NCBI GenBank assembly: GCA_965240325.2
Contig: OZ251222.1
Location: forward strand, 2,480,001-2,544,000
Source of the DNA: Rebecca billardiae RCC1528
Taxonomy: Eukaryota; Protista; Haptophyta
Length of the DNA stretch: 64,000 nucleotides
Reading direction: 5' to 3'
Shown here: one piece after another, positions 3 through 46,936 of the stretch
Layout of the letters: each line of letters opens with the position of its first letter
Position numbering within the stretch: position 1 is the first letter of the stretch
Translations under genes and position numbers: made by a program
Notes under the pieces: model-generated
Seen by the model: the letters and a program-made list of their open reading frames with translations, nothing else
What the model was told of the DNA's origin: nothing
Databases searched by the model: none

Positions 3-3000
3 GCGGGCGCCGAGGCGGCCGACGGCGCCGCGGCGCCGTGGGCGGCGCTGCTCGACCCCAGCTCGAGCTTCAAGCTCCTGTACGCGCTGCAGGTCGTGGA
101 CATGCTCATGCAGCCCAACGACGCCGACGTCGAGTCGCCGCTCTGCCTGCCCGTCGAGGCGGGCGCGACCGTCTCGGATGGGCTGGCGCTCGTGAGCGAC
201 GTCACGCAGCTCTCGGCGTGGTGCGACGCATTCCTCGCGCGCGGCGGCGTGACGCACATGATCCACGTGCTCACCTCGCACGGGCCGGCGCTCCTCGACC
301 CGTGCCGCGGGCCGCAGCGCAAGGCGTGCGTCGCGCTGCTGCTCAAGCTGCTGCTGCAGGTGATCACACGCCCCGAGCTCGCGCAGGCGCACGCGTCTGT
401 GCTGCGCGAGTTCGAGCTCAGCGAGCACTGCGTGTGCATGCTCGACCTGGACGCGAACGACGAGCGGCGCGAGGTGCGCCGCGTGTGCTTCTCCTCGCCG
501 CTCGTCGACGCGATGCTCGAGCTCGTGCTGCACATCGCGCGCGAGCACAGCCCGGGCGCGCGCGGCGGCGCGGGCGCGCCGTGCGCCGAGGCGCCGGCCG
601 CCGCGGCCGAGGCGGCCGCGCTGGTGCAGCCGGCGGCGGCGGCGGACAGCGACGCGGAGATCACGAGCTGCGCGATGCGGCTGCTCGTCGCGATCGCGGT
701 CGCGGGCGTGCAGGGCGCCGACGGCCTCGAGCCCCCGCCGATCTGCCGCGTCGACGCGCCCGAGGGCCTGCAGCGCGCGCTCCAGCAGCTCGTCGACGGC
801 TGCCTGCTCAAGTGCGACCACACCGGGCTGCGCTGGGAGGTGGCCGCGGCGCTCTGCATGCTCGCGCACGCCACGAGCGCGCCGGTGGCGCCCGCGCCGC
901 CGGGCGCCGACGCGCCCGCGCCCGACGCGCCCGACGCCGAGCGGCCCTTCCTGCCCGCGGTGAGCGCGATGCTCGTCTCCTTCCTGCCGCAGATGAGCGT
1001 CGCGCCTGGCGAGCAGGTGGTGCAGTACTTCACCGCGCTCAACGCCGTGTACGAGCTGGCGTGCTCGGCGGGCGGCGCGGCGGGGGCGAGGCTCGGCGAG
1101 ATGCGCGCGCTGCTCCACGCGGTGGTGCAGCAGATGCAGTCGCTGCCCATCGTCGAGCCGCGCTACCCCGACGGCGAGGACAAGGCGCTGATCGGGCTGC
1201 TGCGGCTCACGACGACGATCGTTCGCGCCTTCCCCGACCTTAAGCGAGAGCACGGCCTCATCTCGGTGCTCTTCGACTTCCTCTTCACGATCCAGCTGGC
1301 GAGGCGCACGGAGGGCGGCGGGCACCCGCCGCCGCGGTGCAAGACGCCCGCGTGCCGCGAGGCCGCGCTCGGCTGCCTCGTCGAGCTCGCGCGCGGCTCG
1401 TTTGAGAACATGATGCGGCTGTCGGGACTGCTGCTGCCGCAGCACTCTGGCGGCGAGTCGCGCGCGCAGTGGCACTACATGCCGGCGGTGCTTGAGAAGT
1501 CGCGCAGCGGGTACGTCGGGCTGAAGAACCTCGGCGCGACCTGCTACATGAACTCGCTGCTGCAGCAGTTCTCGATGGTCCCCGACTTCATGCGCGGCAT
1601 GCTCTCGCTGCGACTCGACGACGCGCTGCGGCCCGCGGCCGGCGCGGAGGAGGCGGAGCCGTCGCAGCAGGAGGTCGAGTGCATGGCGCTGCTCTCGCAG
1701 CTGCAGACGATGCTGTGCTACCTCGGCGCGTCGGAGAAGCGCTTCTTCGACACCTCCGAGCTGTGCGCCACGTACAAGGACTTCGACGGCCAGCCGATCA
1801 ACACGTCGGTGCAGATGGACGTGGACGAGTTCTTCTCGACGCTCTTTGACAAGCTCGAGCTCGCGCTCAAGCGCACGCCGCGCGGCAACCTGCTCAAGGA
1901 GCTGTTCGGCGGCGAGACGGTGTCGCAGGTGATCGGCAAGTCGGACGACTGCACGCACACCTCCGAGCGCGACGAGGTCTTCTTCGCCCTGCAGATCAAC
2001 GTGAAGAACAAGCGCTCCGTCTTCGAGGGGCTGAGCGCGTTTGTCGAGGGCGAGATGCTCGACGGCGACAACAAGTACCACTGCGACCAGTGCGGCAAGC
2101 AGGTGGACGCGCTCAAGCGCTGCTGCGTCAAGCGGCTGCCGAGGAACCTGATCCTGCACCTGAAGCGCTTCGAGTTCGACTTCGACCTGATGAAGAAGTT
2201 CAAGGTGAACGACCTGTGCGAGGTGCCCATGACCATCGACATGTGGCCATACACCAAGGAGGGGCTGGCGGAGCTCGACGACGCGCCCGCCGCCGCGGAC
2301 GAGCGCCAGCGCCGCGCGGGCAGCGCGGACGGGATGGGCGAGGACGAGGACGAGGACGAGGAGAACGACCTGCAGGACGGCGGCGCGCGGCGCGCGGCGC
2401 GCGGCAGCGGCGCAGGCGCCGACGCCGGCGCCGGCGCCGGCGCTGACGCCGACGCGGACGCCGACGCCGGCGGCGCGCGGCCCGCGGCGGCCGGGCAGAG
2501 CGGCGCGCCGCACCCGGGCTACATCTTCGACCTCAAGGGCGTGCTCGTGCACACGGGCACCGCCGACTCGGGGCACTACTACTCGTTCATCAAGGAGCGG
2601 CAGCCCGCGCACGGGCGCACCTCGCCGCGCTGGTTCCAGTTCAACGACACGCTCGTCGAGGAGTTCGACGAGGCGGACATCCCGCGCTGTACGTACGGCG
2701 GCCACGAGCCGGTCACGCAGTGGGACCCGATGCAGCACAAGCACGTGCAGCGCTGGCAGCTCAAGACGCACTCGGCGTACATGCTCTTCTACGAGCGGCG
2801 GGACGAGGCGGCGGCGGGCGCCGCGGCCGAGCCGGACGCCGAGCCCGCCCCGCGCGCCGCGAGCGCGGACGCCGCCGCCGCCGCGCGCGCGGACGAGTGC
2901 GAGCTGGGCGGGATGCCTCCTGAGATCTCTGATCTCGTGCGGCGCGAGAACGTGCAGTTCTTCCACGACCGGCACATCTTCGACGAGGCGTACTTTGCGT

Positions 3001-7320: not shown

Positions 7321-7638
7321 TCATCGTTGCCAGAGTCTAATCTGACTACGTCTACTGGCTACTGCATTGTATTTGTAAGAATACTACTGGTACTTGGGAC
7401 TAGCACTGCTATCTGTTTCCGTGCTATGATCAAAGGAATAGTAGAAGTGCTATGATCTACTTGACCAATTGAAGTGACACGACGATGTCATAATAGTATT
7501 ATTAATACTGACTAGTGACTGCCGACTGACCGAATTTCTGAGTTCATATCATATTGATTTGATGACGGTCGTCGACAAGAAAGTGATGCCGTGACGAAGA
7601 AATCGCGGGCGAAGAAATAAAGCGCGAGCGGCTACTGT

Positions 7639-7795
7639 GCCGGTCTGTGGCCGAGTGGGAGTACTGGCGTGCTCTTGCGTCTGAGGTCATGGGTTCAAAC
7701 CCCCAGTTTCCAGGTCTCTCTTCGGAGAGCGTGCGATGAAGGATGGCGCGGCAACCTGCCACCGTGAGCCTTACGCACGTTAAAACAAATATTAA
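7639..7795 (+). mobile_element. tRNA-derived SINE-like element or pseudo-tRNA with a structured 3' part
   Basis: A-box TGGCCGAGTGG at 7648-7658 and B-box GGTTCAAACC at 7692-7701 are at tRNA spacing, but the acceptor stem does not pair. A UUCG hairpin (7716-7729) and an A-rich tail follow. ACTGT flanks both sides (7634-7638, 7796-7800). Confidence 0.55.
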
Positions 7796-7890
7796 ACTGT
7801 AGGGAGCGAGCGGAAGAAGATTAATGGCCCAATAAGATTAATCCCGAAAACAAGGATGGCCGACGCGATCGCCGTCTCCTGAGCTCAAGG

Positions 7891-8640
7891 ATGGTCTGCG
7901 CTGACTGCGAGTCTAAGCTTTCCCGCGTGTCGGCGCCGGACCCGTGGAAGTCGGGCTCGCGCAACACCAACGAGACGGGCCGGCGTGTCGGCGAGAGCAA
8001 GCTCGGCAAAAGCTTCGCGGCACGCCGCTTCAACCCGTACGCGACCTCGCGGTGCTCGGTGTGCAAACAGAGTGCCGCGCAGAATGGCGCCAAGTTCTGC
8101 CAGCCGTGCGCGTACGCAAAGGGCGTGTGCGCCATCTGCGGGAAGCAAGTACTCGATACGCGCTTCTACAACATGGGCGATGGGGCAGCGCGACCCACTC
8201 GAGTGGTTGACCCAAAGGAATTCCACCCTGAAGGCTGGACACCGGAAGGGAGCCCCGCGGCTGCCGATGCTGCCGATGGCGGTGATGGCAAGCGGCCGGC
8301 GCGCAGTCGGGGAGTGGCTAAGGGCGTGCGGCCGGGAAGTAAGCAGCCAGCCGCATCAGCGGCTGTTGCTGCACCACCAGCACCAGCTGCAGGAGGTGCA
8401 ACAGCGAGCGCCGAAGCAGCTGGCTCGGGCACCGGTCCAGCGGACTGGCAATTCGACCCGGCGACGAATCTCTACTTCAGCGTGCAAGCTCAAGCGTACT
8501 ATGACTCGGCGACGGCCATGTACTTCATGGGTGGCGAGTGGCATCGCGAGCTGCCTCAGCAGCTGCCGGCGCAGAGTCAGGCAACGCCAGTCTCAATCCA
8601 AGCTGCCGGCGCCCCTGCGCCTGCTGAACCCGCAGATTAG
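7891..8640 (+). CDS. CRIPT: CRIPT-family zinc-binding protein with a C-terminal OCRE-like domain
   Basis: MVCxxCExKL, PDPWK, RFNPY and CxxCK…FCQPCAYAKGVCAICGK..LDT are CRIPT hallmarks. WQFDPATNLYFSVQAQAYYDSATAMYF has the OCRE octamer aromatic repeat pattern. Confidence 0.88.
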   Translation: MVCADCESKLSRVSAPDPWKSGSRNTNETGRRVGESKLGKSFAARRFNPYATSRCSVCKQSAAQNGAKFCQPCAYAKGVCAICGKQVLDTRFYNMGDGAARPTRVVDPKEFHPEGWTPEGSPAAADAADGGDGKRPARSRGVAKGVRPGSKQPAASAAVAAPPAPAAGGATASAEAAGSGTGPADWQFDPATNLYFSVQAQAYYDSATAMYFMGGEWHRELPQQLPAQSQATPVSIQAAGAPAPAEPAD

Positions 8641-9943
8641 TCGGTAGTCACTAGTCCGGTAGTCCCCGCGGGCCTGCTGTCTGTGAGTGCTGATTGATTA
8701 GCCGCTACCTGATGAGTGATATCAGGGCCTGGTCATCGGAGCGCCTGCTGATGACTCTCGCGTCGATGCGGATAACGCTGGATCGGACCGTCGCGCTGAT
8801 GGCATTCTGACTCCCGACTCGGTCACGTCCACTACACATCGCATTGTCATACGTACTATATCACGACTTATCTGGTATCAGTCTGGCATCGGCACTACAG
8901 TTTACTAATACTAAGAATAAGAGACGCACACAGCTCAGGCAGGCGAGATTGACGCCCGGCGTCTACTTATCGGGCAGATGACCCGCGAATAATTAAATTA
9001 CGTTAAATAATTGTATATATATTAAATGAACCGTAGTTACTACTTGTTAACGTCTTAGCCGTATTAGGCCTGTTTTATTTCTACCAGATTCCATTTCCTA
9101 TGTCACGGCGACAAACCCCTGCCCGCCAGTGGGAATCGGTGTCACGCCCCGTTGGATGTACCTCTCACGGCCGATGGCGGCCCCCACGTGCGCGAGGAAC
9201 GCGATTCCTGCACTCCTCGGTGACCGGTGAGTGCAGGAATGCAGTTGCGGCGCTCGTCCGCCTCGTCGTTGTCGCACACGAGGTACATCCAACACCATGG
9301 GTCGTATCCCAAAACTCTCCGCGCGCTCTGCGCCCGCGCGGCGAGCGATTGCAGGCTTGTTCTCATCATCTTGGCCAAGACTGCAGCCTGCCAGATGCGC
9401 CAGGAGACGTGTGCACGCCTTTCCGCGCGTCATGGGTGCGCGTGGCACGCACCTTGTCATATTTTACGCCGAGGAGGCCTGAGCATCCGGCCTACCAACC
9501 TTCCGCGCTCACGTTCAAATGCAGGCGGCAAGCTGCATGCAAGCGCACGCCGAACGGAAGCATCTCAAGCTCGACAAGGTAGTGGCGGCGGAGCGTTTAG
9601 AGCTGGTGGCGATTGCAGTCCATCTGGCTGTGAACTGGTCGCTAACTGACACGGGTGCGATGCAGCCAAGGCAGAGTGCTTGCAGCTTGCAGAGGGCCTG
9701 CAGCTGCGGCGGTTTGCCCGCCGCTCGCCGGCTGCATCGTACACACTGCCGTGCACCGCGAGTGACCCCTGTGTCAAGGCGAAGCACCACGGCAAGGCGA
9801 GGCAGCATGTCTGACAACATTCTTCGCTACAGCGCAGCGCATCAACACGAGAATGCGCGAATGACGTGCCATCACTACTCCGGACTAGCTCCGGCGCCCG
9901 CACCAGCGGGCAAGCCGCCATTGTTCCCAAAACAGGCCACGTA

Positions 9944-10548
9944 TGGAGCGCTCGTTGGAACTTGGCGGGGCTTGGAACTTGACACCGCATTTCCCAGCGA
10001 AGTGCCCCATCTCGGCGGGGCTGGCACGGTCGGCACACGCTCCTGAGCGCTCGCTTTGCGGTGCGGCAGGCCTTGGGCAGCCCAGACAGACATGCCGCGA
10101 CCGAATTACCGGGCCATGCGCGCACCACACCCGCGCTACATGGCCTGCGCGCTGGACGACTGAGAGGCAACGCCGAACCACTGCATTCCACTGCCCCGCA
10201 TGCACCCCGAGTCACCTTCAGAGGGCGTCGACGAGCGCAGAGCGGGTGCGTGGGAGTTCGACCAACTCATGTACCTTCTTGCAAGCACCAGCGGCGAGGT
10301 CGCAAGCCGAACCTTGACCAGCCGTGGAACTTGAGCTGGTCGGCAGCAAAACCACCGTTTAACCCGGATCAAGTTAGCAGCGTGCGAGGAGGAGGCGCGG
10401 TGCGCGTCCGCGGCTGGCGAGAGGCGTCCGGACCGTGCCGTTCTCGGCCGCGCCCGCGCGCTTCCCGCCGCCGCGGGCCCCGTGTACGCCCGTCGTCGCC
10501 CTCGCCGCGCGGGCGCCAAACCGGCGTCAAGTTCCAACGAACGCTCCA
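9944..10548. mobile_element. Non-autonomous TIR element (MITE, Tc1/mariner-like TA target duplication)
   Basis: GTATGGAGCGCTCGTTGGAACTTG (9941-9964) is the reverse complement of CAAGTTCCAACGAACGCTCCATAC (10528-10551) with 1 mismatch. TA lies on both outer sides, and the TGGAACTTG motif is repeated internally. Confidence 0.7.
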
Positions 10549-36684: not shown

Positions 36685-37587
36685 TCAGGAAGCACTCCCA
36701 AACGCGACGACTATGCTGATGCGCTCCGGGTTGCGCCGAAGGAGGTAGTCCGAGCGTCCCCAGAAGTCCACCACACTGCGCCGCCCGTCAGCCTCGGTCA
36801 CCTCCATCCCGCCGCGGATGGCGTGGCCCCAGGAGTCGCGCGCAGGGCCGGAGAAGCTACACAGGCTGCGCTTTTGTAGGAGCACGTCAATGTCCTGGTC
36901 CGTCCAGGAGCGGAGCCCGATCTCGACCGGGTCCTTCCGCGGCTTGACCCCCGGGGGCACGAAAGTCAGGACGGCGTCGCTGAGGAGCCCTAGGATGAAG
37001 ACCGTCGGCCCGTCGCCCTGAGGGTCCACGTGAGGATCAAGCCGGAAGAAGTGGTTGTCGCGGTAGTTGATCGTCACGTCGCACACGCGCCCGAGCGCGT
37101 ATCCGCTCGCGTTCAGGCCCCGGATGCTCGCCACGAGCTTTGTCATGGCCGCAGGTAGCGCCCCTTCATCGAAGTCGTCGCCATAGCCCCAGGGCGCTGG
37201 CTTCTCCTGCCGCTCGGGCCGCCCCGTGATGCGGCGTGACTTGAACTCGCCAAACTGCTTCATCTCCTCCTTGCTCCCCTCCGAGACCTGCTTCGCACCA
37301 TCGACGGTCACCACCTCGAGACCATGGCCCTCTGTCGTGAAGCCCCATTCTGGCTCCAGCTCACGCACCTCACGCTCGAGCTCCGCTGCAGACTCCTCTG
37401 AGACGAACTTGGACTCGAGGCGGATCCCTGGGTTTGCGTCGGTGCGGATGCGCTTGCCGGTGCCGACTCGTCGGCACGCCTCCTCGTCCAGTTCACTGAC
37501 GGCGCGCTGGAGGCTGCTGAGTGTGCGAACCAACGGACGGCGCAACGCGTTGCTGCACAGGCGGTGCACCTGCCAAGCGACCACCAT
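36685..37587 (-). CDS. AlkB-family Fe(II)/2OG dioxygenase (ALKBH7-like), possibly mitochondrial
   Basis: FVSEE…, TINY, HVD (HxD), R..WGHAI (distal His) and RISIV. The N-terminus is Arg-rich and presequence-like. Confidence 0.8.
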   Translation of the reverse strand: MVVAWQVHRLCSNALRRPLVRTLSSLQRAVSELDEEACRRVGTGKRIRTDANPGIRLESKFVSEESAAELEREVRELEPEWGFTTEGHGLEVVTVDGAKQVSEGSKEEMKQFGEFKSRRITGRPERQEKPAPWGYGDDFDEGALPAAMTKLVASIRGLNASGYALGRVCDVTINYRDNHFFRLDPHVDPQGDGPTVFILGLLSDAVLTFVPPGVKPRKDPVEIGLRSWTDQDIDVLLQKRSLCSFSGPARDSWGHAIRGGMEVTEADGRRSVVDFWGRSDYLLRRNPERISIVVAFGSAS

Positions 37588-37892
37588 CGTCTCGCCGGCA
37601 GGGCGCGGCATACAATGGCGGCCAGGCCGATCGCACGATCGATCAAGGGGGTTCGATCGATGATGCAGCGGCTCGCAGGCCGAAAGCCGACGACGACAGT
37701 CGGCTTGCCCCTCCGCTGTTGACTCCCCTTGGCTGTTCCGCACCGGCAGGACTCGGGAGCCGCGGCCCGGGCGGGCCGGACGTGGAAGCGGTCTTACGGT
37801 ATCCCTCGTCACACACGGCGTTCGGCACCGACGACGCGCGCAGAGCGACGTGCGGATTTTCGCCACGACCTGTCAGCGATACCCCGGCCACG

Positions 37893-39962
37893 ATGCTCAG
37901 CGCGTACAACCGTATGCTGAGCCCCGACAAGCCCGCTGCCGAGCCGCGCATTGACGCCGCGCTCGTCCTGCACTTTGCGCCAACCTGCCCCGACGCTCTC
38001 GTGAAGCATTGTGTCGCCGCCGCGGCGGCCGATGGTCTTCAGGCGGAGGCTGTGGGCGAGCGCTCCATCCACGTGCGTTTCGGCGCGAGGGCGCGGCTGC
38101 GGGCCGAGGCCGAGCAAGCGCGCGTGCTCAAGTTCTCCAAGAAGGAGGGCGCGTGGCTCGAGTACCTCGCCGAGGCGCACGACGCGTACGAGCCGATGCC
38201 CGCGGGCGCGGAGTCGCTGTTCTGCGCGTCTGAGGAGCTCCACCTCCTCGAGCGCGCGGCGAAGCAGATGCCGAGCACCGACGAGGTCGAGCGCGCGCTC
38301 GCGGACGCTCGGCTCGGCTCGCTGCTCCACTCGAACGAGACCCTGCTCGGCGCGCTCGAGCGGCTTGGGCTGCTGCAGGGCGTGCACCGGCCGCACGCGC
38401 GCGCCGAGCTGCGCGCGCTCTGGCGCACGCACGGCTCGCTCACGCGCCCGCTCGACCCCGCCGCCCTCGACGCCATCCGCGCGTACTTCGGCCCCGCCGT
38501 GGGCTTCTACTTCGCGTGGCTCGACCACACCACCTGCTGGTACATCCCGGCGGGCGCGGTGGGCGCGTGCGTGTTTGCTTACCACCGGCTCGAGCACGTG
38601 ACGGTGGACAACTCGCCCATCGTCCCCTTCTTCACGGTGGGTATGCTAGCGTGGGCGCTGGCGCAGCACTGCGCGTGGCGCCGCGCGGCCGCGCGGCTCG
38701 CCGTGCGGTGGGGCGTGTTCGAGCCGCCCCCGGAGGCGAGGGAGCCCGCGCGCCCCGGTTACACGGGCGAGCTGCGCATGTCGCCCGTCACGCTCGAGCC
38801 AGAGCGCCACTTCCCACCCGCGCGGCGCGTCTGGCGGTACGCGGTGAGCGCGGTGGTGACCGCGGCGATGCTCTGCCTCGCGCTCTGCGCGACGGTCGCC
38901 TCGCTCAACTTGCAGGGCTACGTCGACGAGGCCGAGGCGCCGCTCGTGTACGTCGCCGCCCTGCGCCGCCTCTCGCGCGCGGGCGCGCTCTTCGACCCCG
39001 CTGGGCCGAACCGGCTGCTGGCGAACGCGCCCGCTGTGATCCACGTGCTCGCGATCCGCGTGCTCAACACGGCGTACTCGCACGTGGCGGCGGCGCTCAC
39101 CGCGCACGAGAACCACCGCACGCAGCGCGAGCACGACGCGCACCTCGCGAGCAAGCGCTTCCTCTTCGAGGCGGTGGACGCGTACGCGTCTCTGTTCTAC
39201 CTCGCCTTTGTGCAGCTGGACGTGGTCTCGCTGCGCGCGGAGCTGTGCTCGCTGTACACGACCGACTCGGTGCGGCGCGCGCTGACGGAGGCGGCGCTGC
39301 CGCGCGTGCTGCAGTGGTTCGGCCAGCGCCGCCGCTCGCGCGAGCTCGGCCGGCGCAAGCAGTCGGACGGCGACGCGCCCGCCCCCGCCGCCGCGTGGGC
39401 CGACGAGGCTGAGCTGGACGAGTACGCGGCCTTTGACGACTATCTCGAGATGGTGATCCAGCTGGGGTACGTGTCGCTCTTCGCGTCGGCGTTCCCGCTC
39501 GCCGCGCTGCTCTCGGCGGGCTGCACGCTGGTCGAGAGCCGCTCCGACCTGTGGAAGATTACGCACGTGAGCAGGCGCCCCGCGGCGGAGCCGGCCGGCG
39601 GCATCGGCGTGTGGCAGCCCGTCGCGCTCGCCATCGTGCTCTCGTCGATCCTCTCCAACGCGGTGCTGTTCGCGTACGCCTCCGACCAGCTGCAGCAGTG
39701 GGCGCCGTCGCTCTTCGACCCGTCGGTGCATCACCACGGCCCGAACGAGGTGAGCGCGACGTCCCATGCGCACTTCACGCCGCACTTCAAACCAGGGATG
39801 GGCTCGACGGTCGCGCTCATCGTCGTCGCCGCTGAGCACGTCGCGCTGCTCGTGGCAGCCGCCGTGCTGATCGGCGTGCCCAACGAGCCGGATGACGTAG
39901 CCATCACGCGCGCCCGCCGCCAATGGGTCCTCACGCAGCGCCGTGCGGCAACGACGAGCTAA
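37893..39962 (+). CDS. Anoctamin/TMEM16 (ANO8/ANO10-like) channel or scramblase
   Basis: IRAYFGPAVGFYFAWL, LTAHENHRT, SLFYLAF, FDDYLEMVIQLGYVSLFASAFPLAALL, GIGVW and AEH. Confidence 0.93.
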   Translation: MLSAYNRMLSPDKPAAEPRIDAALVLHFAPTCPDALVKHCVAAAAADGLQAEAVGERSIHVRFGARARLRAEAEQARVLKFSKKEGAWLEYLAEAHDAYEPMPAGAESLFCASEELHLLERAAKQMPSTDEVERALADARLGSLLHSNETLLGALERLGLLQGVHRPHARAELRALWRTHGSLTRPLDPAALDAIRAYFGPAVGFYFAWLDHTTCWYIPAGAVGACVFAYHRLEHVTVDNSPIVPFFTVGMLAWALAQHCAWRRAAARLAVRWGVFEPPPEAREPARPGYTGELRMSPVTLEPERHFPPARRVWRYAVSAVVTAAMLCLALCATVASLNLQGYVDEAEAPLVYVAALRRLSRAGALFDPAGPNRLLANAPAVIHVLAIRVLNTAYSHVAAALTAHENHRTQREHDAHLASKRFLFEAVDAYASLFYLAFVQLDVVSLRAELCSLYTTDSVRRALTEAALPRVLQWFGQRRRSRELGRRKQSDGDAPAPAAAWADEAELDEYAAFDDYLEMVIQLGYVSLFASAFPLAALLSAGCTLVESRSDLWKITHVSRRPAAEPAGGIGVWQPVALAIVLSSILSNAVLFAYASDQLQQWAPSLFDPSVHHHGPNEVSATSHAHFTPHFKPGMGSTVALIVVAAEHVALLVAAAVLIGVPNEPDDVAITRARRQWVLTQRRAATTS

Positions 39963-40555: not shown

Positions 40556-42294
40556 CTACCCCATGCGTGTCGGGAGCACCTTCATGCCGCCGCTGTAGCC
40601 GAGGAGGGTTCCCACGATGCTCGCGCCGATGGCCACGCCGACGTACGCGCCAGTAGCCATGGCGCTGTCGCTTGCCTCTGAGAGCGCGCGACTCCCAGCG
40701 GGGCCCACGCACGGATCAACTCCATCATCGTCGTCGTCGTCGCCAACACTTGCGCCACAGCTGAGGAGCGGCAAGGGCTCGTCAGGCACCGTTCCCTGCG
40801 CCGTGAAGCCCACGCGCTGGGCAACATACGCAGCGAGCCGAATCGTGACGACGGAGCCACTTGTCGACACAATGTCACCGTTCCAGACGGAGCTCAGGGC
40901 GATGCCACTCGAGGACCAGTCGACCTCGATCACCGCGCCTGGCACCCACGGCGTGACGCTCACGTAGCCGTTGAACCCACCTGCCCATGAGTTGCTCACG
41001 CCGAAGCTCAGCGCGAGGTCGCACTCCGAGGGCGGCGGCGAGGGCGACGCCGGCGGGCGGTGGGGTGCGGGTGGTGACGGCGGCGGGGATGGTGGCGAGG
41101 GCGGCCCAGCTGGAAGCCTTGCCTGCCTCGACTTGATGTAGCTTCGCAGGAAGCTGCCCGAGCACGAGACTGCATCCCAGTCCTGCGCCGCGCACGCGCC
41201 GGGCAGTAGGGCGGCGGAGGACTCGGCCTTGTCGGCATACGACCACTGGGCGAAGGAGATACGCTGGCCGTACGCGCCATCCGCGTCCTCCATCACGTCG
41301 AGGAAGCGCAGCGCCGTGTCCATGTGCACGCCGCCGTTGCCGTCGGCGGTGGAGGTGCCCCACTCTGTCACAAAGATTGGGATCTGGGCGTGGCATCGCA
41401 GCAGGGTGGCGCGGCGGTGGGGACAGCAGGGCAGGGAGGGCACGGTCGAGAAGTGTGAGCTGTAGCGCGCACGTGACACCCCCGCTCCCCGCAACGCGGT
41501 GAGGCCGAGTGGCGTCTCACCTGCGACGCATACTCCTGCAGGCGCGGCAGGAGAAACTCGTGAGTGCCGGCGTAGAAGTGGAACGCGTACATTACGTGGT
41601 GCGGCTGCGACACGGGGTCGGCGGCGGCGTCGTGGATGTCTTGAGACCACGTGGGTGTGCCCGCAAGGATGATCGTCTCCGCATCGATGGCTCGGATCTT
41701 AGGGATCAGCGCGTCGTGGTACCCCTTCACCTGCGCCCAGCTCACGCCGTTGGGCTCGTTGGCCGTCTCGTACAGCACGTGCTTTTTGCCCACGAAGTTG
41801 CGTGCGGCCTCTTCGAAGAAGCGCGTGGCACCGAGCATAGCATCATGGTACATTGCGTCGTTGGGATCACCAGGCGTGAGCACGTGCCAGTCGATGATCA
41901 CGTAGATGCCGAGCTCCTCTGTCCAACGCACAACGTCGTAGACGGTGGTGTTCACACCGGGGCTGCCGTCCGCATACCCACCCTCACCAACGTACATGGC
42001 CGCGCGAAAGACGTTGATGCCCCAGTGCTCCACCAGGTACTCGATCGATGCCTTCGAGTAGCAGGAGGGAAACCAGTGCAAGCCGTGCGACGACATGCCC
42101 ATTAGCTGCACGGGCTCGCCGGCCTCGTCAACAAGTTGCACACCGTCCAGTCGGAGCTTGCCGTGACGCGTAGCGAAGCCCGTGTTGTCGACATCAGGAG
42201 GATTCGGTGGGACGCCATCGGGCATGTCGCACGCTCCTCGAGCCGGGCGCAGCGCCGCCGTCGCGAGGAGCGCAATGAGCGCGTGCTTGAGCAT
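40556..42294 (-). CDS. GH5 endoglucanase (cellulase) with a Pro linker, CBM2-like domain and C-terminal TM anchor (intron 41384-41520)
   Basis: Signal peptide; QLMGMSSHGLHWF, YVIIDWH, YETANEP (acid/base), FHFYA and IFVTEWG (nucleophile). The CBM2-like part has NSWAGGF…W…SVWNG…GF. The C-terminus is hydrophobic. Confidence 0.92.
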
Positions 42295-42479
42295 CGCGCC
42301 GGCGTCGGACGGGAACGCCGGGTGCAACTTTCCTTCTACTCTCCTATTGGCTGTATTTGGCTCTCAGAAATCGGATGAGCAGCAGCAGGGTGCACTTTCG
42401 TCCCACCCCGCCCGCCCGGGCCGGACCACCCTTGCCTCCGCCGGCGCGCGGAACCCGGTGATTAAAATTCCCCTTTATA

Positions 42480-42985
42480 ACGGGCTCCGGGTGATCAGAC
42501 TGGCGGCCGAAGCCTCCAGCCCTACCATGGCCAGCCCCCAACCAACCACCACCCTCACCCAACCTCAAACCACTGACCGAGACACCAAGTGCCTTGACAC
42601 CACTCCGCTGTGGACAGCCCGCCTCCAGAGGGGGCGGGCGCCGCGAAAGCGCAAGCGCGTAGTTTACCCCCATACCAGTAATTGTTCGTCGTCCCGACGT
42701 CAAGTGACAGTCCATCCATGTCTGATTAGACTCGAGTGATGTCTTGAGTAATGAGTCACTGCTTAGCAGCTTAGCGGATGACGGGCTCCTGGAGTGATCA
42801 GACTGGCGGCCGAAGCCTCCAGCCCTACCCTGGCCAGCCCCCAACCTACAGTAGAGTACCTACCACCAACTACAGTACCACGTCCACCACCCCCACCCAA
42901 CCTCAAACCGCTGTACCTGAGTGCCCTGACACCCTGACACCACTCCATCCACTGTGGACAGCCCGCCCGTCCAGAGGGGCCGGGG
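42480..42985 (+). repeat. Diverged direct repeat pair (about 160-200 bp units at 42480-42638 and 42781-42985)
   Basis: GTGATCAGACTGGCGGCCGAAGCCTCCAGCCCTACC.TGGCCAGCCCCCAACC, CCTCAAACC, GACACCACTCC and TGTGGACAGCCCGCC each occur twice in the same order. Confidence 0.8.
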
Positions 42986-43812
42986 GTATGCCATTGCCAA
43001 CAGCCCGTCACAGTCGCACAGAGACGCCAGAGTACGGTCACAGAGTGTCCGACTCCGAGACTCGGGCGACGGCGACGTACTCCCTATGTCTGACTCTGAG
43101 TCTCGGGCCGGCCACGTCGCGCCTCGCGGACGTTACTTATACTACGGAGTACGGTGGCGCCACCGTACTACTAAGGCGGTCTAGCTAAGAATACTAAGCG
43201 GCGGTGAACTAGCCTGTCCACGGCGGGGGGGTAGCTAGTGTCTGAGTCTCTGAGAGCGGTCACGAATTATTTGCTGAACATCCGATTACCGAATCCGTAT
43301 TAGTATATCAGTCCGTATAAAGTTCTAGCGTATAGCGTCGGCGGGCTCGGAAGTCGGAACCGCCCGTGGCCGTGACAGACTTACGGTCAGTGATTAACTG
43401 ATTTTATAGTAGCTAGTACAGTGCTGCTACTAAGCTAGCTGATGATTAAAATTTACTCATATATATTAATCATACGACCGGCTGTCAGCTACTTGTAACC
43501 GGAGGCGGCCGCCGATTGTATAATATATATATATATATAATGATATGAATGATGATTCGATATATATATATAATCATTGAATATGATATTAGACAGATTA
43601 GATTGACGAATATTGTCCGACATAGTGGCATAGTACGGTTCCGAGAGTCCCGGTCCGCGCCACCTGATAAAGGCCTGCTGACGGCTGATAATGGTGTCGC
43701 CGCCGCTACTTTCTTTGTCCCGTCCGGCGATCGCCGCAGCCGGCTGAGTGCGCCGCCAGTCCGGCCCGAGCACCCGGCCCACACCGACCCGAGCATGGCT
43801 CAGACTCATCAG

Positions 43813-45384
43813 TCAGCATGGGCGCACTCGTTGGATGCCTAGCTTGAGCAGGAACGAGATCGGGCATGCGGCTTGGTGCCCAGATGGCACACCGGGCACC
43901 GACGGCACCGACGCGCGCGCACCGAGCGCCATCGTGGGCGTGTCGTGAGACAGCCGGCTGCCAGCGCCGCGGTGCGCGTCTTCATCGGCATGAGCGGGCG
44001 AGGGCGGCGAGCAGTCGGCGTTGTCCACGGCGCCCCACCACTGCCGCTCAGGGCTCTCCGAGGCGGCCGCGTGCTCGTGAGGCGGGGCGGGGTCCGCCGT
44101 CGGCGGCGAGGCGGCGGGCCCAACCACGACCACGTGGTGCGGTGGCGCTGGCAGGTTCGCGCACAGCATGCGCAAGAAGCTCGCCGGGCACTCGCGCTCG
44201 GGGTCGGGGAGCCTTGGGCGCTTGGCGGATGGCGGGTGGCCTGCGGAGCCACGCGCATCGGGCGAGAGAGCCGCCTCCACGCCAGGCGCAGCCTCGACCG
44301 AAGGGGTCTCCGCCGGCGCGTCGGGCGAGGGGCACGGATCGCGCCCCGGCGTGGGGCACGCAGGCGTTGCCTTGACCAGCACGCGCTCGCGCGCGTCCTC
44401 CTCGGCATCGTCGTCGATCCCGCGGCCTGCGTTGGGCTCCGGGGCAGGCCGCTTGGCGCGAGGCGCAGCCTGTGCACTCTCGGCGTCGTCGTCGCCCGCC
44501 CTACTCGCGAGAGCGGGGCTCAGACTCGCCAGGGGCGCCGAGCCCGCGGGCGCCCTCTCGAGCTCGAGCTCGTGCTCGAAGTAGACGCCGTCCTGAGCGC
44601 ACGCGCCGACGGCCGCGCTCAGCGGAATCGGCGTTCCGGCGCTCACGCTGAGGCTCACGCAGCCGCTGCCCGGGGCCGCAGCACACGGACGCCGCGCGGA
44701 GTCGTGCCCGGAGCCCGGGGAGGCGTGCCCCGCACCAGCGCACCCCGCGCGCGCAGCCGCGCGCGCCTCGTCCGCGGCCCTCGGCGCCGGCTGGCCGCCC
44801 CAGTCGGCCGGGTCGGTGATGGCGTCGAGCGCCCGGCGCGCGTGCGGAGGGATGGTGAGGCACTGCTTCATTTGGAGCTGCTGTGCCGCGGATGCGCGTG
44901 CGGCCGCGGAGTGCGGGTGTGTGAAAGCGGCATGCTTGACGCGCGCTATCAGCCGACGCTGGGCATCCGCGCTCAGCATCAGCGGCTGCGGATCATCAAT
45001 GGTCTGCGTGCGCGTGTTGCCCGCCACCTTCCATGTATCCACGTCGAGGTAGAAGTGCGGCCCGTCGCCGTCGGCGCGTACGACGTCACACAGCCTGATC
45101 GCAAAGCTGTCGACGCATACAACGTGCCCGCTGAGCGGCCTCGTGTCCCCGCTGACGACCAGGCGCGCACGCATGTGGTGGGCACGATCGCTGATGCTCA
45201 CGTCGTGGAAGCTCGCTGCACCCTGGCGATCTGCTCCGGTGCCGGCGCCGCTGGGAGCCGCGGGGGTTGCGTGGACATATGTGATCTGCGCGTAGTGCTT
45301 CTCGCGCATGGGGACATCCATCATGCTTCCCTTGAGCGCGTCGAGAAGCCAAGGCTGCTGTTGGCGCAGAATACTCGCAGCCAT
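43813..45384 (-). CDS. TPP1/ACD/Est3-like OB-fold protein with a long disordered C-terminus
   Basis: N-terminal QPWL…ISDRAHHMRARL…GHVVCV…HFYLDVD…ADAQRRL mirrors the TPP1 OB pattern (PWI…VSDGTHSVRC…EFYLQVD…DVQKKL). Confidence 0.65.
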   Translation of the reverse strand: MAASILRQQQPWLLDALKGSMMDVPMREKHYAQITYVHATPAAPSGAGTGADRQGAASFHDVSISDRAHHMRARLVVSGDTRPLSGHVVCVDSFAIRLCDVVRADGDGPHFYLDVDTWKVAGNTRTQTIDDPQPLMLSADAQRRLIARVKHAAFTHPHSAAARASAAQQLQMKQCLTIPPHARRALDAITDPADWGGQPAPRAADEARAAARAGCAGAGHASPGSGHDSARRPCAAAPGSGCVSLSVSAGTPIPLSAAVGACAQDGVYFEHELELERAPAGSAPLASLSPALASRAGDDDAESAQAAPRAKRPAPEPNAGRGIDDDAEEDARERVLVKATPACPTPGRDPCPSPDAPAETPSVEAAPGVEAALSPDARGSAGHPPSAKRPRLPDPERECPASFLRMLCANLPAPPHHVVVVGPAASPPTADPAPPHEHAAASESPERQWWGAVDNADCSPPSPAHADEDAHRGAGSRLSHDTPTMALGARASVPSVPGVPSGHQAACPISFLLKLGIQRVRPC

Positions 45385-45590
45385 GGCGCCCCCGTTTGAC
45401 GACGACGCAATAAGATTTGAGCAACCGTTCAAGCGGCCAGTCCGGCCAGTATGGCTGCAGACCTGCGCCGGACACGGTGCCCGCTCAGCGGCTCAGGCGC
45501 TCACACCCCTGCCCAGGCCGCGGTTGCGCCGGCACGAGCAAGGACCGCACGCGCGCGCGCTGTGAGGGTGCGCTCGCTACAGCCGTCCAC

Positions 45591-46373
45591 ATGGACTACG
45601 AGCTGCCAGGGCAGCGCGAGCGGAAGCCGGTCAAGTTTGGGCTCGTGTCTGACGACAGCTCTGACGACGAGGACGGCCTCGGTGGCACACTTCGCCGGCA
45701 GCGTAAGAGCCCGACCAAGCGCACAAGTGCAGGCGCCAAGGCGGCGGCCCCAGAGGAGCCGGCCTGCGCGCAGCCGAGGAGCAAGCGGGCCAAGGCCGTG
45801 GCATCGGGCTCGCCACAAGTCATCGACCTTGACGGCGACGAACGCAAGCCGAGGCAAGGGGCGCCCCCTCCGCGCGGCAGGAGGTCGGTGCCCGAGGACT
45901 CTGAGGACGAGGACAACATCGTCCTGAACGCGGACGAGCTCGAGGACCCAGAGGCCCGGGAGCGCCGGCTCAAGCTCGAGCGCTCGCGCAAGATGCTCAC
46001 AGAGGCAGCCGCAATCGACCTGGACGACGAGCCCGCGCCGGAGCCAGACGCCGTCGTGGAGGAGGAGGAAGACTTCATGCTGCTGAGGCGGCGTGCTGAG
46101 CCACCGCCTGCTGCGCCCGCGCCGCCGGCGCCGCGCCGTACCGAGCAGCGCACGATCCGCTTTGCTGTGCGCGTGGGCCAGGGCGAGCCGAGTATGGTGA
46201 AGACCTATTACGACGCGACGTTCGAGAAGCTCATCGCCAAGATGTGCCAGATCCACGGCTTCGACCCGAAGATGGCGAAGCTGCGCTTCGACGGCGATGT
46301 GGTGAAGCCGACTCATACGCCGGCCCAGCTCGACCTGGACGAGGACGACCAGCTCGACTTCGCGGCGAGGTGA
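45591..46373 (+). CDS. Rad60/Esc2/NIP45-like protein with SUMO-interacting motifs and one C-terminal SUMO-like domain
   Basis: SIM-like VIDLD, IVLNADE and AIDLDDE. The C-terminal F.KLI..C…LRFDGDVVKPTHTPAQLDLDEDDQLDF is SUMO-like and lacks the diglycine. Confidence 0.8.
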   Translation: MDYELPGQRERKPVKFGLVSDDSSDDEDGLGGTLRRQRKSPTKRTSAGAKAAAPEEPACAQPRSKRAKAVASGSPQVIDLDGDERKPRQGAPPPRGRRSVPEDSEDEDNIVLNADELEDPEARERRLKLERSRKMLTEAAAIDLDDEPAPEPDAVVEEEEDFMLLRRRAEPPPAAPAPPAPRRTEQRTIRFAVRVGQGEPSMVKTYYDATFEKLIAKMCQIHGFDPKMAKLRFDGDVVKPTHTPAQLDLDEDDQLDFAAR

Positions 46374-46936
46374 ATGTTCGCGTCCCGCCCGCTGTGCAGC
46401 TGCTGTGGGCTGTGGGCACTCAGCCTGGCACTTAGAGCCGATTTGTGCGGCCGGTGATTCGGTGTCCCAGGCTGCCAAGTCTGCAGCTAAGCGCCCACGG
46501 TCATGCAGTGTGAACCGGTGGGCCGCGTGGCGACGTCGTCCTCCGCAGCTTGTCAGTGACCAAAAATAAAAGGATTGTCCACGGCTCCAGCGTGAGTGAG
46601 GAGGGACACGACGAGCCCATTATTACAGTCGGCGTCGTCACTTTAATGAGACTGCTTGCATTACTTAATATAATAATAATAATACTGAATATATATATAT
46701 ATGCTGACAGTATGTATATATATATTTAACGACGTGGCAGCATCGGACAAGCGTCAGGCTCAGAGTGCAACAGACACATAGAATGCGTCCGCGCCTTCCG
46801 ACCAGGTCAGACAGTGCGCCACCCGCAGCCCTGCCCCCCTACGGGAGCGGGGCCGGGATGGAGCACCGCCTCGGCCTGGGGCACACGGCGGCGACGGCAG
46901 ATGCCGCCGCGGCCGAGCGCCTTCCGGAGCACACAT

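Follow-up and report, generated by a model that had tools for sequence, protein, structure and literature searches.

Proteins of the TPP1 type connect POT1, the binder of single-stranded telomeric DNA, to telomerase, and members of the group occur in animals, fungi (Tpz1, Est3) and ciliates (TEBP-beta, p50/Tpt1). The locus described here raises the question whether a haptophyte alga, Rebecca billardiae RCC1528, encodes a further member that has diverged too far for its family to be recognised. It lies in the window, the stretch of 64,000 nucleotides analysed here (assembly GCA_965240325.2, contig OZ251222.1, positions 2,480,001 to 2,544,000 of the forward strand), and a preliminary description made from the letters of the sequence had taken its product for a homolog of TPP1/Est3. 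The coordinates given there for the open reading frame (ORF) were exact: on the minus strand it opens with the first ATG, at 45384, continues unbroken up to a stop codon at 43813-43815 and specifies 523 amino acid residues (Table 1).

The ORF looks like a genuine gene. Its GC content by codon position follows the order GC3 (0.82) > GC1 (0.75) > GC2 (0.61), an order kept along the full frame and found alike in the neighbouring gene. This neighbour, a divergently transcribed and Pfam-supported Rad60-type protein with a SUMO-like domain, has its ATG 206 bp away from the start of the ORF. The locus is 99.1% identical to a second assembly contig (L001), on which the identical 523-aa protein is encoded, and all seven differences between the two assemblies fall outside both ORFs. 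Residues 1-160 have a globular amino-acid composition. Each of these observations argues against a chance long ORF within very GC-rich DNA. Such a chance origin draws some credit from an overlapping antisense ORF of 508 aa (43873-45399, plus strand), which indicates that long ORFs easily arise in this DNA, and from the fact that no RNA runs are listed. The antisense frame, however, shows GC1 > GC3, unlike the frame of the gene, and we regard the absence of a gene at this locus as very improbable.

Table 1 Features of the candidate gene and of its product; positions are those of the window
Feature	Residues	Position	Strand	Basis or remark
Whole gene, single exon		43813..45384	-	523 codons + stop, opening at the first ATG of the ORF
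Candidate TPP1/Est3/TEBP-beta-type OB domain	1-158	44911..45384	-	Atlas neighbours and low-confidence AF2 secondary structure
QPW motif	Q10-P11-W12	45349..45357	-	Pairs with L18-Q19-P20-W21 of yeast Est3
ISDRAHHMRARL	64-75	45160..45195	-	Predicted strand-turn-strand
FYLDVD	111-116	45037..45054	-	Last predicted strand of the domain
DAQRRL	140-145	44950..44967	-	Predicted C-terminal helix begins here
Helical stretch	159-215	44740..44910	-	AF2 pLDDT only 55-59, best part of the model
Low-complexity tail	216-523	43816..44739	-	Ala/Pro/Ser/Gly-rich
NLS-like basic motif	K388-R389-P390-R391	44212..44223	-	Tail sequence
CPASFL, first copy of the hydrophobic CPxSFL motif	399-404	44173..44190	-	Tail sequence
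CPISFL, second CPxSFL copy, near the C-terminus	507-512	43849..43866	-	Tail sequence

In sequence searches the protein is an orphan. Hmmscan against Pfam at E ≤ 10 assigned no family to the whole protein, to residues 1-200 or to ten fragments. The profiles of TPP1 (PF10341), TEBP_beta (PF07404), Rep-A_N (PF04057), RMI1_N (PF08585) and HROB were all without a match at E ≤ 10, although matches weaker than about E 0.1-0.3 are suppressed by the filters of HMMER and a weak targeted match could escape. In the positive control, pieces of yeast Est3 matched PF10341 at 3e-18 and 4e-9. Phmmer against the PDB found nothing for the whole protein or for residues 1-158, a pairwise silence that is expected and uninformative for the TPP1/Est3 family, since yeast Est3, used as a control, retrieves only itself from the PDB. 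Exhaustive phmmer with residues 1-215 against 1.84e9 representative proteins returned only the protein itself, as did k-mer homolog searches with residues 1-215 (E ≤ 0.01), residues 1-172 (E ≤ 10) and residues 150-523 alone (E ≤ 10). A scan of metagenome contigs with the protein gave 112 pattern matches, none of which was confirmed by tblastn. With no homologs found, there is no basis for assessing conservation or for constructing a profile.

A direct comparison was made with yeast Est3. Metagenome contigs were scanned with a 27-nt degenerate pattern for the Est3 peptide QPWIKALIE, and three Saccharomyces cerevisiae EST3 loci, verified by Pfam, were obtained; the two reading-frame pieces used (L002, 7798-8073 and 7530-7796, minus strand) were kept separate. 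BLASTP of the algal protein against the two pieces gave nothing, and Smith-Waterman alignment with shuffles gave P = 0.56 and 0.25. A post-hoc chaining score with length-independent gaps was non-significant as well (P about 0.05-0.13). In an hhalign comparison with Est3 the only block paired was QPW with QPW, at a probability below 1%, a three-residue match being weak when taken alone.

The same tryptophan motif marks the start of the candidate domain, which sits at the extreme N-terminus of the protein and opens with QPW (the PW being residues 11-12, inside QQQPWLLDALKG), as the Pfam TPP1 profile begins with LQPW in yeast Est3. The size of the domain, about 147-158 residues, matches the 158 positions of that profile. 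Further strings listed in the preliminary description are present as well: FYL.VD at residues 111-116, D.Q++L at 140-145 and CLTIPP...L...W at 175-195, with CLTIPP at 175-180 and the tryptophan at W195. The pattern ISD..H.+.A.L fits ISDRAHHMRARL apart from its '+' place, which is occupied by Met71, not a basic residue, with an Arg one residue on. The observation on motifs and ORF was thus partly confirmed. The statement that the motifs stand in TPP1-OB order held for QPW, the sole motif checked, which agrees with that of Est3; for the motif set as a whole, neither the Smith-Waterman nor the chaining test against Est3 gave a significant excess over chance.

Structure prediction was carried out by AF2 without an alignment, and two runs reached a pLDDT of 39.4 and 42.1. 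With these models as queries, Foldseek against the PDB, VIA wide and the Atlas shape search placed no OB fold on top, and the OB domain of human TPP1 (5i2x_A) appeared at Foldseek rank 19 of 350,542 chains with a non-significant E of 1.1; models this poor (pLDDT 39-42) leave the fold searches silent about the true fold. In the low-confidence AF2 secondary structure, a helix at residues 2-22 is followed by strands at 36-39, 57-65, 70-78, 84-93, 96-103 and 107-113 and by a helix at 139-155. This predicted order, in which some six strands lie between an N-terminal helix and a long C-terminal one, would be compatible with a TPP1-type OB domain (secondary structure used for comparison: PMC7338525). 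Only about five residues link the predicted strands 70-78 and 84-93, likewise at low confidence, and hence no acidic TEL-patch helix or loop like that of human TPP1 is evident.

Positive support for the TPP1 reading comes from a single source, the search for language-model neighbours in the ESM-Atlas, where the nearest neighbours of the domain in feature space belong to PF10341/PF07404 with both queries. For residues 1-215, the best three clusters carry PF10341 TPP1 and PF07404 TEBP_beta, with scores of 0.93, 0.93 and 0.92 and 198, 193 and 189 shared features of 256; a cluster named 'EST3 family' ranks first. Seven matches of at least 0.9 fall in the TPP1/TEBP_beta set, and the ten best named matches are all common to one family or clan. 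Residues 55-172, a query without the PW helix, again place TEBP-beta/TPP1 clusters first (0.89, 0.87 and 0.87; 182, 175 and 171 features).

These neighbours have to be weighed against the possibility that the product is an orphan nuclear protein confined to its lineage, whose small beta-rich domain has another or a new fold, its likeness to TPP1 being a false positive common to the preliminary description and the language model. The complete orphan status across all sequence searches points that way, along with the lack of support from Pfam, PDB and fold searches and the pairwise Est3 tests at chance level. The Atlas scores themselves leave room for it: their calibration excludes protein parts, 4-10% of shuffled proteins reach 0.9, ten best matches sharing one family occur in a third of shuffled proteins, and the tool itself labels such matches leads. 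A false positive would, however, have to strike one rare, pre-named family twice with 171-198 shared features, when the Atlas mark of 170 shared features is reached by chance matches in only one or two of ten cases. Because the TPP1 family is rare and had been named from motifs before any search, the agreement of that naming with the Atlas is unlikely to have arisen by chance. We hold an orphan of this kind to be unlikely, though the least improbable of the alternatives weighed here.

The same neighbour lists bear on a different identity. The protein might have an OB fold of a different protein-binding class (RPA70N-like, RMI1-N-like or HROB-like) and serve in replication or repair and not at telomeres, in which case the language model would merely have picked the nearest-looking OB families. 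Rep-A_N (RPA70N) is the next-best named family, at 0.87 for residues 1-215 (168 features) and 0.85 for residues 55-172 (151 features), only 0.04-0.06 under the TPP1-type clusters. HROB (0.79) and RMI1_N (0.76, rank 22 with residues 55-172) are among the neighbours too, the N-terminal OB domain of Rfa1 stood at Foldseek rank 26 with a poor AF2 model as query, and the divergent Rad60-type neighbour represents a genome-stability family. Against this, TPP1/Est3/TEBP-beta clusters lead both queries, filling ranks one to three and sharing more features, Pfam matches to Rep-A_N, RMI1_N and HROB are likewise absent, and the domain of about 150 residues, with its QPW helix and long C-terminal helix, is larger than the 116-118 aa of the Rep-A_N clusters in the Atlas listing. 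The preliminary description had named RPA70N or RMI as the best match that would contradict it; in the Atlas both rank below the TPP1-type clusters. Another protein-binding OB type appears improbable to us.

The layout of the protein, with an N-terminal beta-rich domain, a helical stretch and a long Ala/Pro tail with KRPR, fits TPP1/Tpz1. In TPP1, the OB domain is followed by an adjoining helical region, which contains the three-helix POT1-binding region, and then by a long variable disordered linker (PMC8653790). Residues 159-215 stand in the place of the POT1-binding region here, and three short helices (160-170, 180-190 and 200-212) were predicted within them by low-confidence AF2. CLTIPP also lies in this stretch, and CLTIPP...L...W had been likened in the preliminary description to the POT1-binding segment, a role that would remain putative here. 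The tail had been announced as disordered and Ser/Pro-rich; it is low-complexity, yet rich in Ala and Pro instead (A 19%, P 15%, S 10%, G 8%). Its KRPR motif may direct the protein to the nucleus, and a second basic motif, AKRP, lies at residues 310-313. The two CPxSFL copies are statistically unsupported as a repeat (self-repeat test of the tail, P = 0.65).

Taken together, we favour, with a probability of roughly 0.55, the reading that the product belongs to the TPP1/Tpz1/Est3/TEBP-beta group, as a strongly diverged member confined to its lineage. The homology claimed at the outset is backed by Atlas neighbours of that family, while matches in Pfam and the PDB are absent and similarity to Est3 is at chance. 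On this TPP1-type reading, the N-terminal OB-type domain of about 155 residues, opening with the QPW helix, would contact telomerase (TERT TEN/IFD region) and possibly also RPA, and the helical stretch 160-212 would hold POT1 (encoded outside the window in this alga) by its C-terminal OB fold. The disordered Ala/Pro-rich tail would supply KRP(R) motifs for targeting to the nucleus, and its short hydrophobic CPxSFL motifs, one or both, might anchor the protein to a duplex-telomere factor. We infer the OB fold, all binding partners and the telomeric role of the protein. It is a good, as yet unproven, candidate for the 'missing' algal telomerase-recruitment factor, and the odds seem about even that it is the first TPP1/Tpz1-type protein for telomerase recruitment and POT1 bridging in Haptista, diverged beyond the reach of sequence profiles.

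If this holds, haptophytes would join opisthokonts and ciliates as a third deep lineage of eukaryotes with the POT1-TPP1 pair, an ancestral POT1-TPP1 pair would be supported, and a concrete bait for pull-down experiments would be gained. Since much of the diversity of eukaryotes is already covered by opisthokonts and ciliates, a gap would be filled rather than a view overturned. The protein would further illustrate how a member of a family can be visible only to language-model or structure methods, and other algae and plants without an identified TPP1 may hide equally divergent copies that such searches could find. In Arabidopsis, a TPP1 homolog had not been identified as of 2021, and POT1a has been proposed as the direct contact of TERT (PMC8450087).

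Compared with known systems, the N-terminal OB domain of RPA70 (PF04057) would share a protein-binding OB fold with the algal protein and is the next-best Atlas family, but with a lower score, fewer shared features (168 and 151), shorter clusters and no Pfam match. Budding yeast Est3 resembles the algal protein in the QPW at the domain start and in an N-terminal OB domain (a candidate one in the alga) of similar size. In contrast to it, Est3 is an OB-only telomerase subunit of 181 aa and not a shelterin bridge, and it matches Pfam TPP1 (3e-18, 4e-9). The partners of fission yeast Tpz1, Ccq1 and Poz1, are fungal. Tpz1 shares with the algal protein a similar total length, short partner-binding motifs in the C-terminal part (putative in the alga) and an OB domain, likewise putative in the alga, at the very N-terminus (aa 1-219 of Tpz1, preprint), whereas sequence similarity is undetectable and the two algal CPxSFL motifs are unrelated. 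The clusters of ciliate TEBP-beta (PF07404) are within the top three of both Atlas queries, although the algal protein has no PF07404 match; TEBP-beta of ciliates is, to our knowledge, the only member group outside opisthokonts. We know of no TIN2 outside animals, and a TIN2-binding motif like that of human TPP1 is not identifiable in the algal protein. The latter also differs from human TPP1 in the missing PF10341 match, in showing no recognisable acidic TEL-patch segment, in having yielded no orthologs that would show conservation, and in its Ala/Pro-rich tail, that of TPP1 being Ser/Pro-rich. Nonetheless, human TPP1 (ACD) and its metazoan orthologs (PF10341) are the nearest language-model families, and the algal protein would have in common with human TPP1 an OB-type domain, a short helical stretch and a long disordered low-complexity linker in that order (TPP1 layout: PMC8653790).

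The candidate protein is encoded by a single unbroken minus-strand ORF, as the preliminary description had placed it. This ORF starts at the first ATG past an upstream stop and ends with a TGA/TAA-type stop at 43813-43815. The GC contents at its three codon positions (GC1 0.75, GC2 0.61, GC3 0.82) follow the order GC3 > GC1 > GC2 over the entire length, as in a neighbouring Pfam-supported gene (0.73/0.48/0.85). A second assembly contig of the locus from a public run (L001, 3238 bp) is colinear with the window, 99.1% identical to it and encodes an identical protein; the seven differences between them, six indels and a substitution, are all located outside both ORFs on the contig. Based on the codon-position GC and the L001 copy, the gene is taken as real, and both the codon-position order and the avoidance of ORFs by the differences make a non-gene very improbable. 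The indels comprise a (TA)5 microsatellite unit and stretches of 9, 3, 3, 2 and 1 bp and are confined, like the substitution, to the non-coding flanks at 43559-43643 and 46494-46688; they represent either different individuals or strains, or error-prone assembly of AT-rich stretches. Nearly all of the gene is overlain by an antisense ORF. Since GC1 exceeds GC3 in this frame and its translation is Arg-rich nonsense, it is a by-product of GC-rich coding DNA and cautions against ORF-based annotation in the Rebecca billardiae genome.

Features at the candidate locus and EST3 genes recovered for comparison
Feature	Sequence	Position	Strand	Remarks
Candidate ORF	window	43813-45384	minus	uninterrupted, 523 codons
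Antisense ORF	window	43873-45399	plus	508 aa
Rad60-SLD SUMO-like-domain neighbour	window	45591-46373	plus	260 aa; PF11976, 3.3e-8
GH5 cellulase ORF	window	41368-42327	minus	Pfam 5.8e-44
Anoctamin / calcium-activated chloride channel ORF	window	37521-39962	plus	Pfam 1.2e-96
Saccharomyces EST3	L002, metagenome contig	7527-8073	minus	+1 frameshift intact
Saccharomyces EST3	L003, metagenome contig	9915-10461	minus	+1 frameshift intact
Saccharomyces EST3	L004, metagenome contig	719-1265	plus	+1 frameshift intact

The Rad60-SLD neighbour, acidic and Ser-rich over its N-terminal half and with the SUMO-like domain at its C-terminus, is a Rad60/Esc2/NIP45-type genome-stability protein. It is divergently transcribed from an ATG located upstream, 206 bp from that of the candidate, and hence the two genes likely share a bidirectional promoter. 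Together with the GH5 cellulase and anoctamin genes, it provides no functional clue to the candidate. Between the cellulase gene and the candidate gene, at 42491-42913, two copies of a stretch of ~86 nt occur 303-338 bp apart, consisting of 56-nt and 30-nt blocks that are 96% and 93% identical; they form either a short dispersed or a tandem repeat.

In sequence searches, the candidate is an orphan. Pfam contained no family matching the whole protein, residues 1-200 or ten overlapping fragments at E ≤ 10, and phmmer against all PDB chains yielded no match at the same threshold. K-mer searches of 5.8 billion clusters recovered solely the protein itself with residues 1-215 (E ≤ 0.01), 1-172 and 150-523 (both E ≤ 10), and exhaustive phmmer with residues 1-215 over 1.84 billion representatives had the same outcome. 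No relatives were found in a metagenome scan. There is therefore no alignment to build, which limits all later tests.

In an ESM-Atlas feature search with residues 1-215, the first three clusters all affiliated with TPP1/Est3/TEBP-beta: the 'Telomere replication protein EST3 family' (PF10341 TPP1 60%, PF07404 TEBP_beta 28%; score 0.93, 198/256 features), a ciliate cluster (PF07404/PF10341; 0.93, 193 common features) and a TEBP-beta cluster (0.92, 189 common features). Seven matches within this set scored at least 0.9, and lower scores were obtained for a vertebrate TPP1 cluster (0.87), Rep-A_N (0.87) and HROB (0.79). The search was repeated with residues 55-172 to test whether the N-terminal PW helix alone drives the result. 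The top three were again TEBP_beta/TPP1/Est3 clusters (0.89, 0.87 and 0.87, with 182, 175 and 171 features), followed by Rep-A_N (0.85) and RMI1_N (0.76). In a calibration on whole proteins rather than parts, 0.9 was reached by 4-10% of shuffled proteins, and at least 170 features by 9/10 true same-family first matches versus 1-2/10 chance or distant ones. RPA70N and RMI, which the preliminary description had set against its TPP1/Est3 proposal, are thus present among the results. The Rep-A_N scores of 0.87 and 0.85 favour another protein-binding OB type, e.g. an RPA70N-like one, but Rep-A_N and RMI1_N ranked below the TPP1-type clusters and such an identity is unlikely. Somewhat less remote, though still doubtful, is an unrelated orphan nuclear protein whose resemblance to TPP1 is a false positive; landing twice by chance on a rare family, named beforehand from motifs alone, is improbable, and we give this consideration the greatest weight. 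The language-model neighbours are the only positive evidence for the TPP1 reading.

The motifs behind that proposal were found at residues 11-12 (PW, within QQQPWLLDALKG), 111-116 (FYLDVD), 140-145 (DAQRRL) and 175-180 (CLTIPP, followed by Leu and Trp195). The segment ISDRAHHMRARL at residues 64-75 carries the ISD pattern, except that the position given as '+' is Met71. Low complexity characterises the tail, which begins around residue 216, but it is Ala/Pro-rich (A 19%, P 15%, S 10%, G 8%) instead of Ser/Pro-rich. It contains two AKRP motifs, one of them extending to KRPR (388-391) and resembling a nuclear localisation signal. CPxSFL also occurs twice (399-404 and 507-512), but testing the tail for self-similarity gave no significant result (P=0.65).

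AlphaFold2 without an alignment gave mean pLDDT values of 39.4 (residues 1-215) and 42.1 (residues 1-158), and the predicted three-dimensional models of the domain are unusable. The low-confidence model consists of a helix (2-22), six strands (36-39, 57-65, 70-78, 84-93, 96-103 and 107-113) and a helix (139-155). This predicted order is compatible with a TPP1/Est3-type OB fold, in which five core strands are accompanied by a conserved C-terminal helix (PMC7338525). With the low-confidence models, Foldseek found no PDB match under E 0.27, and an Atlas shape search gave TM < 0.4. Human TPP1 OB (5i2x_A) ranked 19 of 350,542 chains with the model of residues 1-158 (E 1.1, 17% identity, TM 0.18), at best a faint echo that is not significant by the program's statistics; the Rfa1 N-OB ranked 26. 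An acidic TEL-patch-like segment was not located in the low-confidence model, in which the predicted link between strands 70-78 and 84-93 spans only ~5 residues.

For comparison, yeast Est3 was retrieved from metagenome contigs by means of a degenerate 27-nt pattern for QPWIKALIE, a budding-yeast Est3 peptide. The programmed +1 frameshift of EST3 is present in all three contigs recovered; relative to the other copies, that of L004 has three residue differences (T58K, S133P, V157I). The two frame pieces, compared separately and not as one joined protein, both matched the 158-position Pfam TPP1 profile, one at 3.1e-18 (residues 18-92, covering positions 1-70) and the other at 4.3e-9 (positions 98-154). 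As a control, phmmer of the pieces against PDB matched S. cerevisiae Est3 alone (9swn, 2m9v) and missed Hansenula Est3, human TPP1, Tpz1 and TEBP-beta. A lack of pairwise matches is therefore normal in this family and uninformative on the candidate. That the profile readily detects Est3 but the candidate not at all counts against membership. The profile begins at L18-Q19-P20-W21 of Est3, and the candidate carries Q9-Q10-P11-W12 in the corresponding position, at its extreme N-terminus. QPW was the sole block paired by hhalign (probabilities < 1%), BLASTP against the Est3 pieces gave no alignment, and Smith-Waterman comparison, assessed by shuffling, yielded P=0.56 and 0.25. With gaps scored independently of their length, a post-hoc chaining score reached z -0.1 to 2.0 (P ~0.05-0.13, except 0.39 and 0.54 in two settings for the second piece). 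Judged from sequence, similarity to Est3 is not above chance.

Membership in the TPP1/Est3/TEBP-beta family is not established: only the language-model neighbours and the three-residue motif link the candidate to it, the profile does not match, and the OB fold is putative. We consider a divergent TPP1/Tpz1-type protein somewhat favoured (probability roughly 0.55). Pfam TPP1 reportedly occurs throughout the metazoans and in 'a number of unicellular organisms' (PMC8653790), a TPP1 homolog had not been identified in Arabidopsis as of 2021 (PMC8450087), and our literature searches located no work on haptophyte telomere proteins. If right, the candidate would be an extremely divergent new TPP1-type member in a lineage without any described. 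Its OB domain would then contact TERT, the helical region (160-212) may hold POT1, and the tail could tether the protein to duplex-telomere factors.

TPP1 consists of an N-terminal, telomerase-binding OB fold, an adjoining three-helix POT1-binding region, and a disordered linker of 50-700 residues followed by a short C-terminal partner-binding motif (PMC8653790). In Tpz1, the OB fold occupies residues 1-219. In the candidate, residues 1-~158 form a beta-rich domain in the low-confidence model, followed by three short predicted helices at 160-212 (pLDDT 55-59, the best part of a poor model) and a low-complexity tail of 308 residues, in which NLS-like motifs and a pair of short hydrophobic ones occur. 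This layout of beta-rich domain, predicted helices and long tail fits TPP1/Tpz1 better than Est3, which is OB-only.
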